The notes under the pieces: generated by a model
Database searches by the model: none
Told to the model about the DNA's origin: nothing
The model's input: the letters and a program-made list of their open reading frames with translations, nothing else
Position numbers and translations under genes: made by a program
Sequence record: MK250017.1
Length of the DNA: 64,000 nucleotides
Strand: one strand, 5' to 3'
Part shown: piece after piece, positions 1,488 to 63,765 of the stretch
Layout of the letters: the number at the start of each line of letters is the position of its first letter
How positions within the stretch are numbered: position 1 is the first letter of the stretch

Positions 1488-1521
1488 AAAGGTTAAGATC
1501 TTAAAAGAGATCTTAACCTTT
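1488..1521 (-). terminator. Intrinsic terminator hairpin downstream of DUF2828 gene
   Basis: Perfect inverted repeat aaaggttaagatct/agatcttaaccttt with A/T tails. Confidence 0.7.
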
Positions 1522-1560
1522 AAATAACATTAATATTTATATTATGGTACTAATATAAAA

Positions 1561-2922
1561 TTATTTTGAAATATTCTTTGAATACTCTTCAATAAGTGTA
1601 TTCAAGAACTTCTGTCCATCAAATCCAACATTAAGGAACTTCAATAACATTGGTGAATAACCAGACATAAAAATATTTCCATACTTATCTGTCTCTGGTG
1701 ATGTCGTATTTCGAGAATTGAAATTCCACCAAACAAGCTTTGTATGCATTCCATTCTGCTTGAAAATATTCATCATCTCATCCTTTGTTTGATTTGAACC
1801 GCTATCAAACTCCATATCTGATAATACGACAATCCAATCTGGTGCATTCGTTGAATCAAGTTCCTTCAGCTTTGCGCATACAGCGCCAAAGTCTGTATTA
1901 GAGCAATCACCAGTATACATTGATTCAAGTTCTCTCTTATACTGAGATTCCTCAAAAAGATGTTGCTTTGAAAATTTTGGTGTTGTTCCCCAATAACCTC
2001 CGCGTACATAAGTATTTTCTACACCAAGCTTCAACAATACAGGGTGTGAAGAAAAACTCAAAACCGTATCTGGAGCATATGTTGAACACTTTGCAAGATA
2101 ATGACCTACTGCTAAAGCCTTTCCATAACTATCATTACTATCTTGCATTGAACCAGAAGAATCTACAACAGGAATCCAACTTCCTGAAATCTTTTCAATC
2201 TTTGAAAAGAACAAATCAGGATCAATCTTATCACGATTCTTATAAATGTCATAAACATTTGTAGTAGAAACCTTCAATTCTTGCTTACCTGAACGAACAT
2301 CTTCCAAATACTTTTGAAACCTTACCTTTGTATCTTCACCTGTTGAAAATCTCTTAAAATACTTAATCATTGCAAGTGATGGAACCTGTGAGAAAATAAT
2401 CTCTTCCGTTCTATGTCGTGACAACTTATTTTCTGTTGTATCAGACTTAATAAAATGTCCATAAGTCTGCTTATTCATATGAAACTGCTTTGCAATCTTA
2501 CGAGCAAGCATAAGATTCTTAGATGAATATCTAGGCATCCACTTCTTACAAAGTTCATTTCCTGACTTAATTTCACTATACAAAAATTCGCACATTTTTG
2601 CAAATGAAATTTCTCCCATCGATTCCCATCCAATAAACAAATCATCGAAACGACCAGCTTTTACTACATCAGATGGTGTTACCTCGGTCAATAACATAAG
2701 ACGACGACCAAGTTCACGTCTACCCAATCCAAAACGAGGATCTCGCATCATCATGGCAAACAACTTTGCAGTCATAGAAGTACCAATATATGGAATTTCA
2801 TCAAGATGCTTACCATAATATTCTGACATAAAGAGAATATCCAACATAGGATTCATTGTAGTGTTATATGCATTATCACCATTCTCTGTAGTCTTCTTTG
2901 CAAAAATTTCTTCCAATGTCAT
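1561..2922 (-). CDS. DUF2828-family TROVE/Ro60-like protein with C-terminal vWA domain
   Basis: N-terminal TENGDNAY..LDILF, RDPRFGLGRR, GRFDDL, KWMPR, VPSLAM motifs; vWA motifs VVDSSGSM, LSDMEFD, VWWN; no in-frame TAG. Confidence 0.75.
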   Translation of the reverse strand: MTLEEIFAKKTTENGDNAYNTTMNPMLDILFMSEYYGKHLDEIPYIGTSMTAKLFAMMMRDPRFGLGRRELGRRLMLLTEVTPSDVVKAGRFDDLFIGWESMGEISFAKMCEFLYSEIKSGNELCKKWMPRYSSKNLMLARKIAKQFHMNKQTYGHFIKSDTTENKLSRHRTEEIIFSQVPSLAMIKYFKRFSTGEDTKVRFQKYLEDVRSGKQELKVSTTNVYDIYKNRDKIDPDLFFSKIEKISGSWIPVVDSSGSMQDSNDSYGKALAVGHYLAKCSTYAPDTVLSFSSHPVLLKLGVENTYVRGGYWGTTPKFSKQHLFEESQYKRELESMYTGDCSNTDFGAVCAKLKELDSTNAPDWIVVLSDMEFDSGSNQTKDEMMNIFKQNGMHTKLVWWNFNSRNTTSPETDKYGNIFMSGYSPMLLKFLNVGFDGQKFLNTLIEEYSKNISK

Positions 2923-3030: not shown

Positions 3031-3109
3031 ACAAGAGTCTATTTACCATATCAAGGATTATCTTACAAATAATATATTTTCTAATTAATTTGCTGTTTTG
3101 ACTCTCATG
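3031..3109 (-). ncRNA. ACAGCAA stem / anticodon-loop element A (undescribed motif)
   Basis: Minus strand ATGAGAGTC-AAAACAGCAAATT...aatcc-TTGATAT-ggtaa-ata-GACTCTTGT; first 22 nt match 62024-62045 at 21/22. Confidence 0.55.
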
Positions 3110-3157: not shown

Positions 3158-3712
3158 TTAATTTTTATTTGCACTTGGTAAATGTCCATGTGAAATACAC
3201 CATAACATTAAATCATATACAAGTGAAATAAGTTCATCACCTTCAAGTTCAGGATCTTTAAATTCATGTTTTTTTATTTTAATGTGTTTATATATACCTT
3301 TTGTATTAATAGGTTTATATAACACTTTATACATATAATCAATATCTTTATTCTCATCTTTTTGTTTAATTATATGTAATTTTAATGTATGATAATTTTT
3401 TGTTTCGTCTATATTAACTGCATTATATTCATTATCACAATATATAGTTGATGGGAGTAAATCTATCATTTGTTCAAGTGTCCAACTTCTATATGATAAT
3501 TTTGTATTAACTCTATAATAATTAGAAGTACCAAAATGTAAATCATTGTATGATGTTGTACGCTGTGTCAATACTAAATCAAATTCATAACTTATATTAT
3601 CAAGTGAATTAGTATGTGAAAAACACATATGAACATGTTTATATGATGGAGAATATCCGCCATATACATCATTTATTTTCTTTTGCTCACTTTCTGTTAA
3701 CCACGTTCTCAT
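3158..3712 (-). CDS. Hypothetical protein
   Basis: 184-aa ORF with AT-rich phage codon usage; no recognisable motif. Confidence 0.7.
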   Translation of the reverse strand: MRTWLTESEQKKINDVYGGYSPSYKHVHMCFSHTNSLDNISYEFDLVLTQRTTSYNDLHFGTSNYYRVNTKLSYRSWTLEQMIDLLPSTIYCDNEYNAVNIDETKNYHTLKLHIIKQKDENKDIDYMYKVLYKPINTKGIYKHIKIKKHEFKDPELEGDELISLVYDLMLWCISHGHLPSANKN

Positions 3713-48057: not shown

Positions 48058-51000
48058 ATGGGAAAAATTTCTATTGACTTATCTACTATAAAATCAGCAG
48101 GTATTTATACTATAGAAATCGATAACTCACAACGTGAGGTAACAAATCCTACTTCACTTCGTTTGTTACCTGGTTTTAATAATAAAGGTCCTTTCAACCG
48201 TCCAGTATTTATGCAGTATGAATCTGAACGTCAGAAGATCTTTGGAGATATTGATAGTAAGCTTGAGTAGAAAGGTTGTTTCTTTAATAGAATGGCATAG
48301 ACAATGCTTAAGAACGGTCCTATATTGGCTCTTAATTTGTTAAAAGTTGATGATTCAATTGATGGTCCAGACCAGGTAAACTATGCTACAATGTCATTAG
48401 ATTCATGTAAGCCAAATCCTAAAGTTACAAGCGCAGGAAAAACTTATGGTGAATATGATTATCAGGCAGCAACAATTAATAATAAGTTATATGGTTCAAA
48501 ACAGGGTGATGTAATTCCTTATGTAGGTAAAACACCATATGCAAGTTTGTTTGACCGCGCACGTTTCTGGATTCCTTCTAAGAATAATCTTCAGGCTGTT
48601 GCAGCTAATGGTTTATTGAGTAATGATCAGGGTTCATATGAACATACTAATTTACTTAATTTTGCTAATACAGGTACTGATGAAATTTCAATTCTTGTTT
48701 ATAAACCAGAAAATGTTACAGGTTATAATGTAACTGCAAAAGAATGGTGGGGTGGTGATGAAAACATTCCTTATGGATGGATTCGTCCATCTGATTATAT
48801 TTCAGATTACTTTATCCGCGTTGTTGCAATTAAAGGTAATTGGACAAATTATCCAGTTCTTGCAAGTGATCCTATTTGGAGTAAGTATTTCGATAAGAAT
48901 GGTGTAATTAAGAATAAAGTTTCATCATTATGTTCAGCAGAAGGCGTAACATTTATCGGTTCTTGGACAGGTTCAATTATTCCTGACTTTGTTGATAAAC
49001 AAGGTAATTATATGTATATTGAATCAAAGGTAAATGCAAATACAGAACGTACTGGTCTTTTGATGTCTGTAAATGAAGATGCTCTTCAGGTTATTTCATA
49101 TGACAAGAATGGTGTTGATATTGAAACAGGTAATGAAAACGGTACAGGTACATGGGTATTTGATTTTGATGGAAATAAACAAGCAGAATCAGAACTCGGT
49201 GAAAGTTCAATTAATGAATCTGGTTATCTTGTTGATATGGTTGGACATAATTTACAAAATGGTATTTATGCAGATAACTATTATTTAAATCTTGCCCATC
49301 CATTGTCAAATGAACAAAAACTTCCAGATGAGTCTGTTTTATGTTATACATATTATTTCCAGAAAACACAGGCTAGTTGTACAAAAGATTTAAATGCATG
49401 GTGTATGTCATTTAATGGTAGAGATACATTAACAGCAGAAGATGATGTAGTTCCTGCAGCAAAAATCAGAGTGCTTTATTGTAAAAATCAATCAATTGAT
49501 ACAAAGAAATTTGTAAAGGCATATTCAGTATATAATGCAGAAACAAATCAACCTGTTAAAGCAAATAATTCTAAATATGGTGCAAACTTCTATATCATGG
49601 AAGAATATAATGTTGATGAAAAGAAATCATCATTATCTACAGAGCTTTAGAAATGTTTAACAAAACCTCTTACTGATTTAACTAATGAAACTGGAAAGAA
49701 AACATTAGAAGCGATAACTACAAAGCTTAAGGGATTACCTGTATATGCTCAACCTAATTTAAAGGTTTCATATAATATAAAAGATGTTGTGTATAAACTT
49801 GATAAGAATAATAAGTTTACTGCACAGCAAGCAACAGTCGCAGATGTAATTTCAAATGATGCAAAATATCTTTATATTAAAGAAGTACCTGTAACATCTG
49901 ATACAAATGATAACTATGTATATGAGGATAAGACCATGTATTATGGCACATACGCAATTCCTGTAGTACCAGCTCCTAGAACCGAAATCGTTGCTGATGC
50001 TGATAATACAAGCGATAAGGTAGAAGTTAAGTTATTCTCTGTAATAGCAGGAACTAAAGCAAATTCATATGCAATTATTCATGATTTAGGAACAATTACT
50101 ACTACAACTGCAACTAATAAGTTAATTCCTGTTGAAATTACAAATTATAAGGATTCAAAAGCAGATACAGGTACTAGTGCAAAAGCTCAAGGATTTACAT
50201 TCAGCTATGGCGGAAATGATTACTTTGTTAGAGGAATCAGTGCAATACCACAAGCAGGAGGTATTTATACAGCTATGTATAAACTTGTTAATTCTGATAC
50301 TCCAACTTATTTCGGTGTAAACTTTATGTCTTATAACTATATTACAGAGCATGTAAGTGAAGTTATTACAAATGCATATAATGCATATTACTTTAATGGA
50401 TATAAGAATACTTCAAGCGTTGCAGCAGCGGTTAATTTACAAACTACAGATTTATATGATGAAGGTACATGTCCAGTAACAGATACAAATTTAAATTCAT
50501 TCATTATTACTAATGAAACAGAAGCAAATAATATATCTGTAGGTGATTATGTAAATAATATTTCATTCTATAATAATGTTGGTGAAGCAGAAAAATATAA
50601 TTTGATTCCAGGTATTACACGAGTTATTACAAAGGTATTCGTTAATGTTGATGCTCGTAATGAATTCTATTATAAGGGTTCTAAATATCATATTAATATT
50701 GGAGCACTTGGTGATGGTAATTTAATTGAAACAACTGCAGGTAAGAGAGGATTCTATTTGTTCACAACATTAGATCCTGTTTATATCAGTGATACTAATT
50801 ATGTTGTTCGTCAGAAACCAATTACAGATGATAGTATTTCACATAATTTGAAGTTTATCCCTCTTAAAGGTTTGCATATTTCAGCAAAACACCGTCCAGG
50901 ATTTGATGAATATGGAAAACTTGATATTGAAGGTGGTATTGAAAAGATTTACTCAATGCTTCAGGATGATGGAATTCATAGAGGTCTTTGTAATCCTAAT

Positions 51001-59593: not shown

Positions 59594-59666
59594 GGTCCGT
59601 CTGGTGTAATTGGTAACATGGCAGATTGTGGTTCTGCAGTACAGGGTTCGAGTCCCTAACGTGACC
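59594..59666 (+). tRNA. tRNA-His(GTG), irregular acceptor stem
   Basis: gcaga-TTGTGGT-tctgc anticodon arm, D stem gtgt/acat, T loop TTCGAGT, G-1:C73; the acceptor pairs only with a bulge. Confidence 0.7.
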
Positions 59667-59736
59667 CAATTTATATTTTTAAGTAAACTATTGATATAGT
59701 TCTTAATATAATTATAAGAATATTTTATATTAATAT

Positions 59737-60744
59737 ATGGAAATTAAATAGTTTACAGATGATACATTAAAACATGTATTTGACACATGTACATCAACAA
59801 TGAATATATTGGAATTATTAGGTTATGAACCTTATAAAATAAGAGGATAGAAATGTAAAGAAATATTGAATATATATGCTAATTAGATTGGTGTCAATAT
59901 AGAAGATTATAAATCAAATAATATAAAATTTAGGAAATATAATGAATTACATCCTGTATGTAAAATATGTGGTAAAGACTTAACATATAAACAGTATAAA
60001 GATAAACAATCTTTTTGTTCATCATCATGTGCAGCTATTTATAATAATTAGCATAGAACTATTTCTAAAAAACAAAAAAGTATATTTTCTAAAAAATAGA
60101 GTATACGTTCTAAAAATGTTTATAAAGAAAAACCTAATTATGTATTAAATACGGAATTAATTAATCAAGGAAAAATATTAAATGATAAAAATATTCCATA
60201 TAAAGAACATTATATGGATATAACAAAATTAGGTGTACATATATGTCAAATATGTGGAAACGAATTTATACCATCTATTACATTAAAAGGTGATATATCA
60301 AAAGCTACAACATGTTCAGAAGAATGCCATAAAATTTTAGCAAGCAAACGTTCAAAACAAACTGTATAGCGTCTTATTAAAGAAGGCAGACATAGTGGCT
60401 GGGCATCTAGAAAAATTACAAGTTATCCAGAAAAATTTTGGATTAATGTATTAAATAATAATCATATAAATTTTATACGTGAATTTAAAGTAAAACAAAT
60501 TTCAGGTTATTGTTATTTTTTGGATTTTTTGATAGAACACAATGAACATAAAATTGATTTAGAAATAGATGGACAACAACATAAGTATAGAAAAGAACAT
60601 GATAAAGAACGAGATGAATATTTATCATCATTAAATTATTTAATATATAGAATTGATTGGAATAATATAAATACAGAAAATGGAAAATTATTAATGAAAG
60701 AAAAAATTGATAATTTTTTAAATTGGTTTAATAATTTGGAGTAA
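59737..60744 (+). CDS. Homing-type endonuclease (Vsr/DUF559-like) in tRNA cluster, 335 aa (code 15)
   Basis: Zinc motifs CKICG..FCSSSC and CQICG..TCSEEC; SYPEKFW..REF..YFLDF..LEIDGQQH..DKERD..IYRIDW. Confidence 0.75.
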
Positions 60745-60758
60745 AATTATTAAATTTA

Positions 60759-60831
60759 CGGGTAGTAGTTCAATTGGTAGAATGCTAGTTTTGGGAACTA
60801 GTGGTTGTAGGATCGTGCCCTATCTACCCGA
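60759..60831 (+). tRNA. tRNA-Pro(TGG)
   Basis: Acceptor cgggtag/ctacccg; ctagt-TTTGGGA-actag; atypical T loop ATCGTGC. Confidence 0.85.
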
Positions 60832-60949
60832 CGGAATCGATAAATCTGATATTATCCTTACGTAATTAATCAGATTTAAAACTTTAGATAGTAAGGTATC
60901 TATATAATGGAAGTTCACGCCTAAGGGAAGATTTATACATTATAATTTT

Positions 60950-61024
60950 ACTCTGTTAGCTCAATTGGATTAGAGTAATTCGCTACGAACGAATAGGTTA
61001 GGAGTTCGATTCTCTTACAGAGTA
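60950..61024 (+). tRNA. tRNA-Arg(ACG)
   Basis: actctgt/acagagt; attcg-CTACGAA-cgaat; T loop TTCGATT. Confidence 0.9.
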
Positions 61025-61031
61025 CAAATAT

Positions 61032-61104
61032 ATCTCTATAGTTTAAGTGAATAAAATAGGATTTTCCTAAATTCCAGTTACTGGTTTGATTCCAGTTAGA
61101 GATA
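61032..61104 (+). tRNA. tRNA-Arg(CCT)
   Basis: atctcta/tagagat; ggatt-TTCCTAA-attcc (one U-U pair); actgg-TTTGATT-ccagt. Confidence 0.7.
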
Positions 61105-61654
61105 CATTAATTATTTTGATAAAAAATAAGAGAAATATATAGACTTTTATTTGATTTCAACATATACATTATGTTAATTGGATGAACAGTTAATAATTAA
61201 TAATTAATAATAAAAATACTATTAAAATGTGGGGTTTTGAGTGCCCATCATTTAAAGAGTTTCGAGAAGAAGACATTGTATGTAAAAGCATTAAGTTTCA
61301 TTTAGCTGATGAAATGTAGTCAAGCGTGATGGTATCGATGTACATGGGTCCATCCGTATAACTTCGAGGAATCATAAGCATTAATCTTGGAGAGTACAGT
61401 TTTTAGTCTGAAATGACGAATTTTCCTACTGGTTGCTCAATATGACATTAAGAGTCGGAGATAATTATTTGTAAGTTCCACAATTACAAGAGGAAAATGG
61501 AATTAAGTTGTCGGAATAACGTGATTATTCTATGTGCGAGTAAGAAAATGAAAGTAGCATTATATGTATGGTGTACGTATACATATAGAAACAAAGCAAA
61601 TAATAACCCTTAGAGAATTTGCCGAGAAAAGGACATTAATAGTATTTATAATTT

Positions 61655-61725
61655 GCGGGTATAGCACAATGGTAGTGTTCCAGTCTTCCAAACTGGCAAT
61701 GTCGGTTCGATTCCGATTACCCGCT
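61655..61725 (+). tRNA. tRNA-Gly(TCC)
   Basis: gcgggta/tacccgc with U73; ccagt-CTTCCAA-actgg; T loop TTCGATT. Confidence 0.95.
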
Positions 61726-62023
61726 CAAAGATAAAATTAGGTATACATAATTTTGTATCGAAGCTTTATATTACCATTAGTCGTAATATTCAAATCGTTC
61801 GTTGACATGGTTATTCCGTGATGTTAGTAGTAAGTTATAATCAATTTATAGCAAACGGAATATTAATAAAAACGTACTCGGCGTTTAAGTTGAATGTACC
61901 ACGCTGCCCGTATTGTTGACATTTAATTAAGTATTTAATTAAGTTGAAACATATGTTTAAAAAACTTATGGTACCACGAGTGTTTTCTACGTCGTTTCAC
62001 TCATTTTTTTGATATAATAATAT

Positions 62024-62083
62024 ATGAGAGTCATAACAGCAAATTTAGTTCTATTGTTTATTGGGATAACATAAGACTCTTGA
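62024..62083 (+). ncRNA. ACAGCAA stem / anticodon-loop element B (Pro-like UGG loop)
   Basis: ATGAGAGTC-ATAACAGCAAATT...tgttt-ATTGGGA-taaca-taa-GACTCTTG. Confidence 0.55.
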
Positions 62084-62097
62084 ATCAATTATATTAG

Positions 62098-62159
62098 GGG
62101 AGATATTACAGCAAATTATTATTTAGGATCATACTTTTAATATGAAATTCTTGTCTCCT
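62098..62159 (+). ncRNA. ACAGCAA stem / anticodon-loop element C (Lys-like UUU loop)
   Basis: GGGAGATA-TTACAGCAAATT...tcata-CTTTTAA-tatga...TGTCTCCT; perfect 5-bp + 7-nt anticodon arm. Confidence 0.55.
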
Positions 62160-62167
62160 GTTTATTT

Positions 62168-62247
62168 GGGTAAATGCCTGAGTGGTCGAAGGGAATGGTC
62201 TGCAAAACCATTATTATACGTCGTGTGTTCGAATCACACTTTACCCT
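62168..62247 (+). tRNA. tRNA-Cys(GCA) with enlarged variable region
   Basis: gggtaaa/tttaccc with U73; atggt-CTGCAAA-accat; ~11-nt variable region; T loop TTCGAAT. Confidence 0.85.
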
Positions 62248-62576
62248 CTAATATAAAATATTTCCGTGGTATACAGCACGTAAAAAGAGGTTGACTTGTA
62301 TATTCTATAGACCTACTGTATAATAATATATATGATGTACATGTGAAACACCATGTTCTATTAAGAGTTTAATAAAACTGTGGTTGTTATTAAATTGCAC
62401 TGATATTAGATGCATAATATATGATGAATATAATGACGGTACTGTGAAATGACTATTATTTTTAGTTGCTTGGAAACGGCGTACGAAGTTTTTATAATAG
62501 TGGAAGTAATGATAAAACAGTTAAATGTAAATCTTTCTGAGACAATGGGGACAACTTGTAGTAAGAGAGTATTTTT

Positions 62577-62680
62577 GTTGATATAGTTTAATGGGAAAAC
62601 ACCCAAATCCCAGGGATAAGAGATAATACTTTGAAATAGGTATTAGAAGATTTTAGATGGTTCGATTCCATTTATCAACT
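62577..62680 (+). ncRNA. tRNA-like RNA 1 with expanded anticodon domain
   Basis: Acceptor gttgata/tatcaac, D arm gttt-aatggga-aaac, T arm gatgg-TTCGATT-ccatt; 54 nt between D and T arms. Confidence 0.6.
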
Positions 62681-62689
62681 CAAATTAAT

Positions 62690-62810
62690 GAAGTGTGTAG
62701 TTTAATTGGTAAAATATCCTTTGAATAGGACTGTGCGCAGATAGAACATAATGTTAGTCATATTAATCGCATTATTGATAATGATGTTGGTTCGATTCCA
62801 ACGACACTTC
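62690..62810 (+). ncRNA. tRNA-like RNA 2 with expanded anticodon domain
   Basis: Acceptor gaagtgt/acacttc, D arm gttt-aattggta-aaat, T arm gttgg-TTCGATT-ccaac; 69 nt between D and T arms. Confidence 0.6.
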
Positions 62811-63096
62811 CTAATAAATAAAAAGATCTCGGTAATTAGATAAAACATTATATGAGTGAAGCAACTCACCATAACTGCAGATAAATGAGTGAGGGACATA
62901 AGAGTGTATGAAGAAAGATGGACTATGGACACCACCATATAATTGCGTTTTCAATAATAGTAAAGTAAACTTTAGTATAAGTTCCATTAACGCTAAAATA
63001 GAAACATTGTTATTGAAGTCTACTATGCGTGCGATGGTTGAATGAAACCATTGTAGTTCTAAGGCATTGTAAAACGTTTTATTTATTAATTTTTAT

Positions 63097-63170
63097 GGCG
63101 AGATAGCTTAGTTGGTCAGAGCGCAGGATTCATATCCCTGAGGTCGTGTGTTCAAATCACACTTTCGCTA
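63097..63170 (+). tRNA. tRNA-Met(CAT), elongator type (Ile2 not excluded)
   Basis: ggcgaga/tttcgct; cagga-TTCATAT-ccctg; G1-U72 pair, so not an initiator. Confidence 0.85.
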
Positions 63171-63250
63171 CTATTATTTTTTGATTGTTTATTTTTATAA
63201 GAGGTATATCATTTTTTGGTATATCTCTTTTTTATTTAGGAAATAATGTG

Positions 63251-63258
63251 TATCTTTG
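63251..63258 (+). promoter_or_regulatory. Bacteroidota sigma-A type -7 promoter element
   Basis: TGTG-TATCTTTG about 28 nt upstream of ATG 63286. Confidence 0.7.
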
Positions 63259-63285
63259 AATTGTTATTAATAAAATAGTAATAAA

Positions 63286-63765
63286 ATGAAGAAATATAAA
63301 GTATATCAACTTCGTAGAGAAAACGAAAATATAATTGATGATTATCATGAATCATATGATGCAAAAATGAAAGTTATTGCATCATATGAGATTTCATCTG
63401 ATAGAAATGATCCTGTTATTATATCAGAAGATATATGGCAAATGTGTAATGTTCATTGTTGGGATCATACATGGTCTGATGGACAAGTTGTTAAACGAGA
63501 TGATATTACATTAACACCTACATCTGATTTTGATGGATTTGTTAATAGTGATATTGTAGTTGAAACTGTAAATGGATTATATCTAGCAGAATCATGTGGA
63601 TTTATGAAGGTGGATTCATTGAATTATGCTATGCATAGAATTACTGTAAGATTTCCATTTATCTCTTATTATGATATAAGAAATAAAGAGGATTTTAATG
63701 AAGATTTACTTCGTGATATTCGTAATGAAATTCAGAAAGAATATCAGAAGAGAATTGAAGAGTAA
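63286..63765 (+). CDS. Hypothetical protein (putative early gene)
   Basis: 159-aa TAG-free ORF. Confidence 0.7.
   Translation: MKKYKVYQLRRENENIIDDYHESYDAKMKVIASYEISSDRNDPVIISEDIWQMCNVHCWDHTWSDGQVVKRDDITLTPTSDFDGFVNSDIVVETVNGLYLAESCGFMKVDSLNYAMHRITVRFPFISYYDIRNKEDFNEDLLRDIRNEIQKEYQKRIEE

Follow-up and report, generated by a model that had tools for sequence, protein, structure and literature searches.

Small RNAs of a previously undescribed family in Lak and other phages, probably Y-RNA-like companions of a Ro60-like protein

We have analysed a 64,000-nt stretch of sequence record MK250017.1 (the window, by which we mean the whole of that stretch), which from position 61600 to 63300 is 100% identical to Prevotella phage Lak-A1, ~98% identical to Lak-A2 and Lak-C1, and ~78% identical to the Lak-B clade. 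Two short tandem elements, B and C, lie within a tRNA gene cluster near the end of the window, and two further copies, A and A2, lie near its beginning, upstream of a gene whose 453-aa product resembles the ring protein Ro60 in its predicted fold. These four elements are small non-coding RNAs of one previously undescribed family, marked by a terminal helix and an ACAGCAA box; no description of a family so marked was found in the literature that we searched. Since the elements always accompany the Ro60-like ring protein, in Lak megaphages as in other gut phages, they are most likely phage Y-type RNAs with a tRNA-imitating variable part, and we regard it as probable that they constitute a new Y-RNA-like family which works with a DUF2828-type, Ro60-like partner in RNA quality control or repair.

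An earlier note on this DNA had described B and C as tandem "mini-tRNA" elements, each with a terminal stem of 8-9 bp and a box immediately after it. We confirmed both elements, and found the box ACAGCAA next to the stem in each; the closing helices are present as claimed, but their lengths are 7 bp (B) and 8 bp (C). As read from the sequence, the parts of the two elements are as follows.

62026-62082, plus strand: element B, a short member; 5' strand of the helix GAGAGUC at 62026-62032, 3' strand GACUCUU at 62075-62081, then G62082
62036-62042, plus strand: box of element B, ACAGCAA, after the spacer AUA and before the variable interior
62098-62160, plus strand: element C, a short member; 5' strand of the helix GGGAGAUA at 62098-62105, 3' strand UGUCUCCU at 62152-62159, then G62160
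62108-62114, plus strand: box of element C, ACAGCAA, after the spacer UU
62129-62145, plus strand: hairpin of element C, UCAUA-CUUUUAA-UAUGA, within the outer helix AGGA(U)/(A)UUCU

Common to B and C are the terminal helix of 7-8 bp, a spacer of 2-3 nt, the ACAGCAAA box, a variable interior and a 3' (U)G tail. The hairpin of C is, as the earlier note had it, a true look-alike of the anticodon arm of tRNA-Lys(UUU). The Pro-like loop seen by the same note in B, AUUGGGA, did not hold up: it sits on 4 bp and a U-U mismatch, does not appear in the minimum free energy (MFE) fold, and is not conserved, its position in Lak-B1 being taken by an 8-nt GUUUGAAG loop. In single-sequence folding, B, C, or both together were no better than shuffled sequences on either strand (z = -0.26 and -0.80); with folding energies so unremarkable, support for these RNAs comes from sequence comparison and not from thermodynamics. 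Lak-B1, which is ~78% identical in this region, retains both elements with their stems and boxes conserved and their interiors rewritten. Between Lak-A1 and Lak-B1 the helix of C has undergone a compensatory change from A-U to G-C as well as a change from U.G to C-G, and the CUUUUAA loop of C has been replaced by GCUA.

A 20-nt pattern common to B and C, GNGAGNNANNACAGCAAATT, occurs 3 times in the window where 0.12 occurrences are expected, and its third occurrence led to element A. Covariance models (CMs) R1 to R3, grown stepwise from C alone, recovered A, B and the diverged copy A2, together with dozens of elements in other phages. The first model, R1, made from C alone, gave B just 18 bits, and R3 gave 62.3 bits to C, 53.5 to A, 46.8 to B (which is in its seed) and 24.4 to A2 (23.5 with R2); with R3, only these four copies were found in the window. 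One CM match, at 50044-50136 (22 bits), falls in apparent coding sequence and was gone with the broader R3, and we rejected it. The additional copies and the gene that they adjoin are these.

3032-3106, minus strand: element A, the third copy, in the leader of the Ro60-like gene; 5' strand GAGAGUC at 3106-3100, 3' strand GACUCUU at 3039-3033, then G3032
3096-3090, minus strand: box of element A, ACAGCAA; the interior carries a UUGUAAG loop
2951-3016, minus strand: element A2, a diverged fourth copy in tandem with A; 5' strand GAAAGUU at 3016-3010, 3' strand AACUUUU at 2958-2952, then G2951
3006-3000, minus strand: variant box of element A2, UCCGCAA, read from the sequence
1561-2922, minus strand: gene of the presumed protein partner (453 aa), with Pfam DUF2828 and DUF7788 and a match to PHROG 850, "RNA-binding protein"

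Both A and A2 are contained in the 235-nt gap upstream of the open reading frame (ORF) 2922-1561, with A2 ending 27 nt 5' of the start codon. This region is conserved between Lak-A1 and Lak-B1, in which the orthologue of A lies at locus L054, 1520-1453, and that of A2 scores 36-42 bits and has the box ACCGCAA. In Lak-B1 each of the four elements has an orthologue, and there is a fifth copy as well (locus L077, MK250020.1 128847-128935, plus strand, 47 bits); a fifth copy is also present in a Lak-A-like genome, G004 (locus L092, 39171-39288, plus strand, ~30 bits). In these Lak genomes the fifth copy is distant from the Ro60-like gene and likewise from the tRNA cluster. Whole-genome copy counts were taken from Lak-B1 and from G004, a close relative, with a first-look filter that scored 150 candidates and may miss weak copies.

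Across the family, the RNAs are defined by an end helix of 7-8 bp, a mostly single-stranded (U)UACAGCAA(A) box placed 1-3 nt past the 5' strand, and a (U)G tail. In a CM alignment of 32 sequences the terminal helix was 94% paired, as compared with 38-47% when the partner strand was slid; 7 of the 8 helix pairs showed changes on both sides, with 63 double-change cells (18.7 +/- 3.6 in shuffles) and a covariation score for the helix of 0.715 (0.25 in shuffles). MAFFT alignments put the 3' strands wrongly, and CM alignments grown from C were used instead; because the latter lean towards the modelled helix, the slid controls were added, as was an independent count by regular expression plus pairing. 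Among 67 distinct elements the helix formed in 65 of the MFE folds. The terminal helix is a real base-paired structure. Its eighth pair is optional, and its outermost pair is G.U in 21 of the 32 sequences, which argues for an RNA that is read on the strand of the element.

To relate the elements to the gene, we examined 16 viral loci and 19 loci from metagenome-assembled genomes (MAGs), each encoding a homologue of the 453-aa protein, down to ~25% identity, for the arrangement [7-bp strand][1-3 nt]ACAGCAA[12-190 nt][complementary strand][(U)G]. At least one element was present at each of the 35 loci (1-4 per locus), and in 211 kb we counted 65 elements on the strand of the gene and none on the opposite strand; at the same stringency the window yields only A, B and C. 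CM matches in the MAG loci likewise fell on the gene's strand in 28 of 28 cases. A first pattern scan of viral contigs had given 48 loci, mostly chance matches in coding DNA, which were discarded; the real ones were Lak-like contigs and the contig L010. Arrays of elements usually lie directly 3' of the gene, often with tRNA genes after them, and in Lak the array appears to have been split, with A and A2 at the gene and B and C in the tRNA cluster.

These counts bear on whether the units are RNAs at all. Short inverted repeats are found at both ends of each unit, as would be the case for a DNA-level element such as an inverted-repeat protein site or a miniature mobile element, and several copies begin with AUG-NNN-NNN-NNN-ACA-GCA-AAU, with an AUG ahead of the helix in the Lak, L010 and L064 subgroup, as though they were short peptide genes (B would encode MRVITANLVLLFIGIT). 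Yet orientation is strictly one-stranded, a G.U closing pair would turn into an A/C mismatch if the opposite strand were read, and the interiors of different copies are unrelated, unlike those of mobile-element copies. As for peptides, no reading frame is maintained, given spacers of anything between 1 and 3 nt, and most members are without an AUG, C itself having AGG in Lak-A1 and AUG in Lak-A2. On this evidence the small-ORF and mobile-element readings were dropped, and we regard a DNA-level element or a set of peptide genes as very improbable. Type III antitoxin repeats and terminators were also weighed and dropped.

The 453-aa protein is the constant companion of the RNAs. Its ORF is open under table 11 with no recoded codon, and the results are therefore independent of genetic code 15. 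An AlphaFold2 model of the protein had a predicted local distance difference test (pLDDT) score of 87 and a predicted template-modelling (pTM) score of 0.82, and its 13 best Foldseek matches in the Protein Data Bank (PDB) were all Ro60/TROVE structures, matched over the full length at E values from 4e-8 to 2.7e-5; they included the Ro60 of Thermus phage phiLo (4e-8), Xenopus Ro (5.5e-8), human Ro60 and Deinococcus Rsr (2.7e-5), and were followed by vWA/MIDAS domains. The predicted architecture is that of a HEAT-repeat/TROVE ring joined to a vWA domain with a DxSxS MIDAS, in which D254, S256 and S258 are invariant in the alignment. A search of gut-phage and metagenome proteins gave 1,896 homologues at E<=1e-5; the domain name DUF2828 also appears in plant papers, and ROT/TROVE proteins are carried by some jumbo phages. 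Just upstream of A and A2 there is a 184-aa ORF (3158-3712, minus strand), the 3' part of which is conserved in Lak-B1 over the aligned stretch and which has no match in Pfam, PHROGs or NCBIfam.

In other phages, neighbours of the elements include genes for an RNA ligase (L066), Band-7/SPFH proteins (L109, L111) and EF-Tu (L010), and tRNA arrays. RNA ligase and Band-7/SPFH neighbours fit the RNA-repair role proposed for Ro modules, and EF-Tu and the tRNA arrays suggest a wider connection to RNA involved in translation. A link to RNA quality control or repair, which the earlier note had put forward for B and C, is thereby strengthened, in that the family accompanies a Ro60-like protein that elsewhere neighbours RNA ligase or Band-7. 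RtcB (PF01139) is absent from the Lak-like genomes, so that there is no RtcB link in Lak, and in the genome G002 it is present only far from the locus.

Two observations concern the sampled loci themselves. On L010, a 99-kb viral contig (IMGVR_UViG_3300014047_000002), three tandem elements stand between two terminator hairpins, and another element, 152 nt long, is found beyond a gene, on its other side; directly after the three Y-like elements comes a gene (1493-2677, minus strand) for a full-length EF-Tu homologue (GTP_EFTU plus domains 2 and 3, E 5e-65), and an RtcB gene lies ~26 kb away on the same contig. In the bacterial-genome collection, DUF2828 homologues (L095-L113) were found almost only on MAG contigs of 15-50 kb, binned as Bacillota (Clostridia, Bacilli, Erysipelotrichaceae), and none of these was from Prevotella; the contigs look like phage contigs in bacterial bins, and the family would accordingly span phages of very different hosts.

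The interiors of family members imitate tRNA. In the 67 distinct elements there were 32 hairpins with 7-nt loops (5.1 +/- 2.3 in shuffles), and in 23 of them U was at position 2 of the loop and a purine at position 6 (0.8 +/- 0.9 in shuffles); among these are the CUNNNAA loops CUUUUAA, CUUGUAA, CUGCUAA, CUGUUAA, CUCUCAA, CUGCAAA and CUGAAAA, as well as T-loops. A T-loop of the form GGUUCRANNCC is present in 21 of the 67. The long member of L066 (3911-4040) matches Rfam YrlA over the full model with 41 bits (E 1e-5 in 56 kb, 7e-8 locally) and that of L068 (4028-4150) matches across the model with 29.7 bits, the threshold being 69; in both, a T arm, a closed acceptor-like hairpin and a D arm can be made out, and the long member of L010 (4636-4485) has the same three arms as judged by eye. 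Other members have D, anticodon and T arms in tRNA order. The tRNA imitation proposed by the earlier note is thus statistically strong for the family's interiors, but B, A and A2 are without a conserved anticodon-like loop. Similarly, the 7-nt loop, persistence of which in homologues had been left to be checked, is lost from both B and C in Lak-B1, yet CUUUUAA recurs on five different stems (UCAUA/UAUGA, CGAU/AUCG, UCAAA/UUUGA, CUGUA/UACAG and GUAUC/GAUAU, from Lak-A, L010, L102, L104 and L105), often inside the same AGGA...UUCU outer helix. This recurrence makes the Lys-like arm a conserved feature of one subtype, its loss in Lak-B1 notwithstanding.

Host anticodon nucleases such as PrrC and PARIS AriB target tRNA-Lys(UUU). 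Elements such as C might therefore be free-standing anticodon decoys, hairpins that soak up or inhibit these nucleases with no need for the Ro60-like protein. Maintenance of the CUUUUAA heptaloop on five stems, the strong enrichment of CUNNNAA-type loops, and the location of B and C among phage tRNA genes all speak for such a role. Nevertheless, the part of the family that is conserved is the helix with ACAGCAA and not the loop: Lak-B1 has GCUA in place of the loop of C, the loop of B is not conserved, and in many members an anticodon-like loop is missing or a YrlA-type domain is present. A decoy by itself would also leave the obligatory co-location with the Ro60-like gene unexplained. We consider free-standing decoys unlikely; decoy action could instead be the role of the variable domain within a ribonucleoprotein (RNP).

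Comparison with known RNAs favours the Y-RNA-like reading. The Ro60 of phage phiLo binds two adjacent Y-like RNAs and host PNPase (PMC12135203), and YrlA RNAs are encoded on the same strand as Ro60, within 4 kb (Chen et al. 2014, PMC4201824). In Y RNAs, Ro binds the 5' strand of the terminal helix, and the opposite end is a tRNA-like effector module; the RNA-ligase and Band-7 neighbourhood has been described for Rsr/YrlA loci, too. Like Y RNAs (YrlA/YrlB, RF02553; phiLo Yrl1/Yrl2), the phage elements are same-strand neighbours of a Ro60-type ring protein, often several in tandem; their paired ends form a helix accompanied on its 5' side by a brief conserved motif, and the opposite end is variable and imitates tRNA. 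The long members match YrlA from end to end of its model. Same-strand proximity to the gene holds for the family (35 of 35 loci) and for A and A2, and pairing of the 5' and 3' ends is a property of the helix described above. The differences are that the partner is a DUF2828/DUF7788 protein, Ro60-like only by predicted fold; that the motif is (U)UACAGCAA after a 7-bp helix, versus GNCGAAN0-1G/CGAA, the recognition motif of Ro/Rsr near the 5' end (PMC4201824); and that the minimal B and C have no T or D arm, and some members possess an anticodon loop, which Salmonella YrlA lacks. T and D arms were absent from A, A2, B and C, and present in the long relatives of L066, L068 and L010. In this comparison the helix-plus-ACAGCAA elements would work like a Y RNA yet are a different family.

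Nor are B and C reduced tRNAs. Neither ARAGORN nor Rfam gave a tRNA match over 62024-62162, and no cloverleaf of D, anticodon and T arms can be seen there. Likenesses to tRNA consist of the 7-bp closing helix, the loop of C, which is identical to the CUUUUAA of tRNA-Lys(UUU), and the D, anticodon and T arms that some relatives carry in tRNA order beside Band-7. In this last respect they recall the band-7-associated tRNA-like RNA (b7a-tRNA) predicted by Burroughs & Aravind 2016, as cited in bioRxiv 10.1101/312249. Unlike tRNA, B and C lack D and T arms as well as any CCA or discriminator context, and nothing in tRNA corresponds to the ACAGCAA box. The helix with ACAGCAA is a non-tRNA feature, and the term mini-tRNA is better replaced by that of a minimal end of a Y-RNA-like family.

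An Rfam search, which the earlier note had recommended, brought no family to its threshold on the elements. The sole family to match B or C directly was RF01414, the Dictyostelium Class I RNA, with 33.7 bits for C and 35.1 bits for a relative in L064, and these were the only RF01414 matches in ~62 kb searched. Class I RNAs carry an 11-nt motif beside the 5' strand, CCUUACAGCAA, with U3, C6, C9, A10 and A11 invariant; their genes have the dictyostelid DUSE promoter ~60 nt upstream, and the RNAs are reported to be unique to Dictyostelia (Kjellin et al. 2021, PMC7919456). All five invariant positions are present in C (AUUACAGCAA) and in B (CAUAACAGCAA). Both kinds of RNA are ~60 nt long and have a short end helix followed by ..UUACAGCAA, a variable remainder and a 3' ...C-UG(U) tail; many phage members differ in beginning with A and in having A-rich stems. 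The present sequence is from a phage of gut bacteria and not from a dictyostelid, and accordingly the DUSE promoter is missing. Binding of Class I RNAs to the RRM protein CIBP has been reported, and a pull-down gave CIBP, GuaB, NdkC and DDB_G0281243, a protein of unknown function. To our knowledge, no function has been assigned to dictyostelid Class I RNAs since their discovery. The likeness may be convergence. Alternatively, the helix with (U)UACAGCAA might be a general recognition element for DUF2828-type proteins, with Class I RNAs as eukaryotic kin, DDB_G0281243 or another amoebal DUF2828/TROVE-like protein as the counterpart of the partner, and C-type RNAs as Ro-bound baits that show a tRNA-Lys loop to host anticodon nucleases; we think this extended proposal rather doubtful.

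With regard to expression, B and C lie inside a one-strand tRNA cluster (59594-63171, plus strand: His, Pro, Arg, Arg, Gly, Cys and Met, by ARAGORN and Rfam), in which two features border on the argument.

62168-62248, plus strand: tRNA-Cys(GCA), which begins 8 nt past element C (ARAGORN and Rfam)
63199-63229, plus strand: intrinsic-terminator-like hairpin, the sole one detected downstream of the tRNA cluster

The hairpin is likely to be the end of the transcription unit that holds B and C. We used Logan contigs from four animal-gut metatranscriptomes (X5, X7, X12 and X13), in which depth is given per contig. Contigs extending across B and C were present in each (X5, 61624-62830; X7, 61698-62309; X12, 61698-62330; X13, 61956-62200). 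The depth of the spanning contig, relative to flanking coding DNA, was 116 versus 16-33 in X5, 143 versus 0-12 in X7 and 4036 versus 0-15 in X12; the segment 61600-62830 exceeded flanking coding depth 5-fold to >100-fold in 3 of the 4 runs, and depth dropped past ~63020-63150, near the hairpin. Transcription together with the tRNAs, as the earlier note supposed, is supported by the position of the elements inside the tRNA unit, by its one terminator and by these enriched contigs. A scan for sigma-70 promoters gave no more sites than in shuffles. A TGnTATAAT at 62010-62018, just 5' of B, was spotted by eye, and we attach no weight to it, since promoters in Bacteroidota and phages are different.

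The same location raises the possibility that the elements are degenerate genes for tRNA or Y RNA, or that they are hairpins in spacers, which would only direct cleavage of the tRNA precursor and would have no function as free RNAs. Such an origin would suit their position in the tRNA operon, 8 nt 5' of tRNA-Cys, their fast-evolving interiors and their folding energies, which are no better than those of shuffles. Against this stand the preservation of box and helix, both between Lak-A and Lak-B, where the helix has changed in a compensatory way, and over the 35 loci with protein homologues down to ~25% identity, and the occurrence of copies away from any tRNA, in the leader of the Ro60-like gene; moreover, a 7-nt box foreign to tRNA would not persist in a remnant. 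We judge remnants or punctuation hairpins to be decidedly unlikely.

Several other features of the tRNA cluster were noted in passing. A block of ~75 nt immediately 5' of B (61946-62023, plus strand) is unusually conserved between Lak-A1 and Lak-B1; it holds GGTACCACG, a motif found again at 61887 and, reverse-complemented, at 62266, and terminates in TGATATAAT, 8 nt ahead of the first helix base of B. This block may be a phage promoter or regulatory block. The gene-free segment between tRNA-Arg and tRNA-Gly (61197-61649, plus strand) has the top RNA-library depth of the region (up to 2337 in X13, 1083 in X7), and one X13 contig links 61649 back to 61197 (453 back), as a circular or permuted RNA would; the segment is without an Rfam match, and its fold z-score is only -1.17. 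Two tRNA-like genes (62577-62680 and 62691-62810, plus strand) score above the Rfam tRNA threshold (38.9 and 32.3 bits) and are uncalled by ARAGORN; they have normal acceptor, D and T arms, with 43 and 63 nt in place of the 17-nt anticodon arm, and may be tRNAs with introns or tRNA-like RNAs of some other kind. The intergenic segment 3' of tRNA-Cys (62255-62571, plus strand) is 88.6% identical to an unannotated part of the crAss-like phage cr130_1 (NC_055901.1 67503-67717), and is therefore a non-coding piece common to unrelated gut phages. A variant with a 60-nt deletion at 62330-62391 was observed in runs X7 and X12.

To return to the Y-RNA-like reading, a number of our observations weigh against it. 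The kinship of the 453-aa protein to Ro60 is seen by predicted fold alone, at TM scores of 0.45-0.53, and the protein has no match to Pfam TROVE, to PDB sequences or to NCBIfam. B and C are 59 kb from its gene, which only A and A2 adjoin. In place of GNCGAAN0-1G, which is absent, B has AUAACAGCAAA and C has UUACAGCAAA; at the YrlA gathering score of 69 bits there is no match on the window elements, and the best relative attains 41. Nor does C attain the RF01414 gathering score of 41.5, and B gave no RF01414 match at E<=10. The box is mostly unpaired in only 36 of the 67 MFE folds. In run X13 the contig over B and C was no deeper than coding DNA, and, depth being per contig, the data show that the tRNA-cluster segment is abundant in RNA libraries and do not resolve B and C as discrete small RNAs.

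In our preferred, Y-RNA-like reading, the arrangement mirrors that of Ro60 and its Y RNAs, and the helix with ACAGCAA is read as a protein-binding module and the interior as an effector or bait end; helix plus box are most likely the binding site for the Ro60-like ring protein of the phage. We infer each of RNA processing, protein binding and biological function from such likenesses, and picture them as follows. The ring protein would bind the constant module, as Ro60 binds Y RNAs through their terminal helix, and the variable interior between the box and the 3' strand would be the "business end". Long members have there either a YrlA-type tRNA-like domain or an almost entire tRNA-like core; short ones are reduced to a single hairpin, which in C copies the anticodon stem-loop of tRNA-Lys(UUU). 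B and C are made within the tRNA operon and would presumably be excised by tRNA-processing nucleases. The RNP would then act during infection in RNA quality control or repair; it might, for instance, connect the ring protein with a host exonuclease or an RNA ligase, or offer a bait that looks like tRNA.

If this reading is true, the large DUF2828/DUF7788 family would gain a function and an RNA partner, and the principle of Ro60 and Y RNA would extend to a second protein/RNA pair that is unrelated to the first in sequence. The unexpected likeness to Class I RNAs is a concrete lead for the Dictyostelium RNAs. Y-like RNAs would be able to exist with no more than a helix, a box and a single anticodon-like hairpin, and such minimal members would provide a simple system for asking what purpose is served by the tRNA-like end of Y RNAs. 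Finally, the tRNA clusters of megaphages would be tied to a module for RNA quality control or repair, which is perhaps relevant against host defences that cut tRNA.

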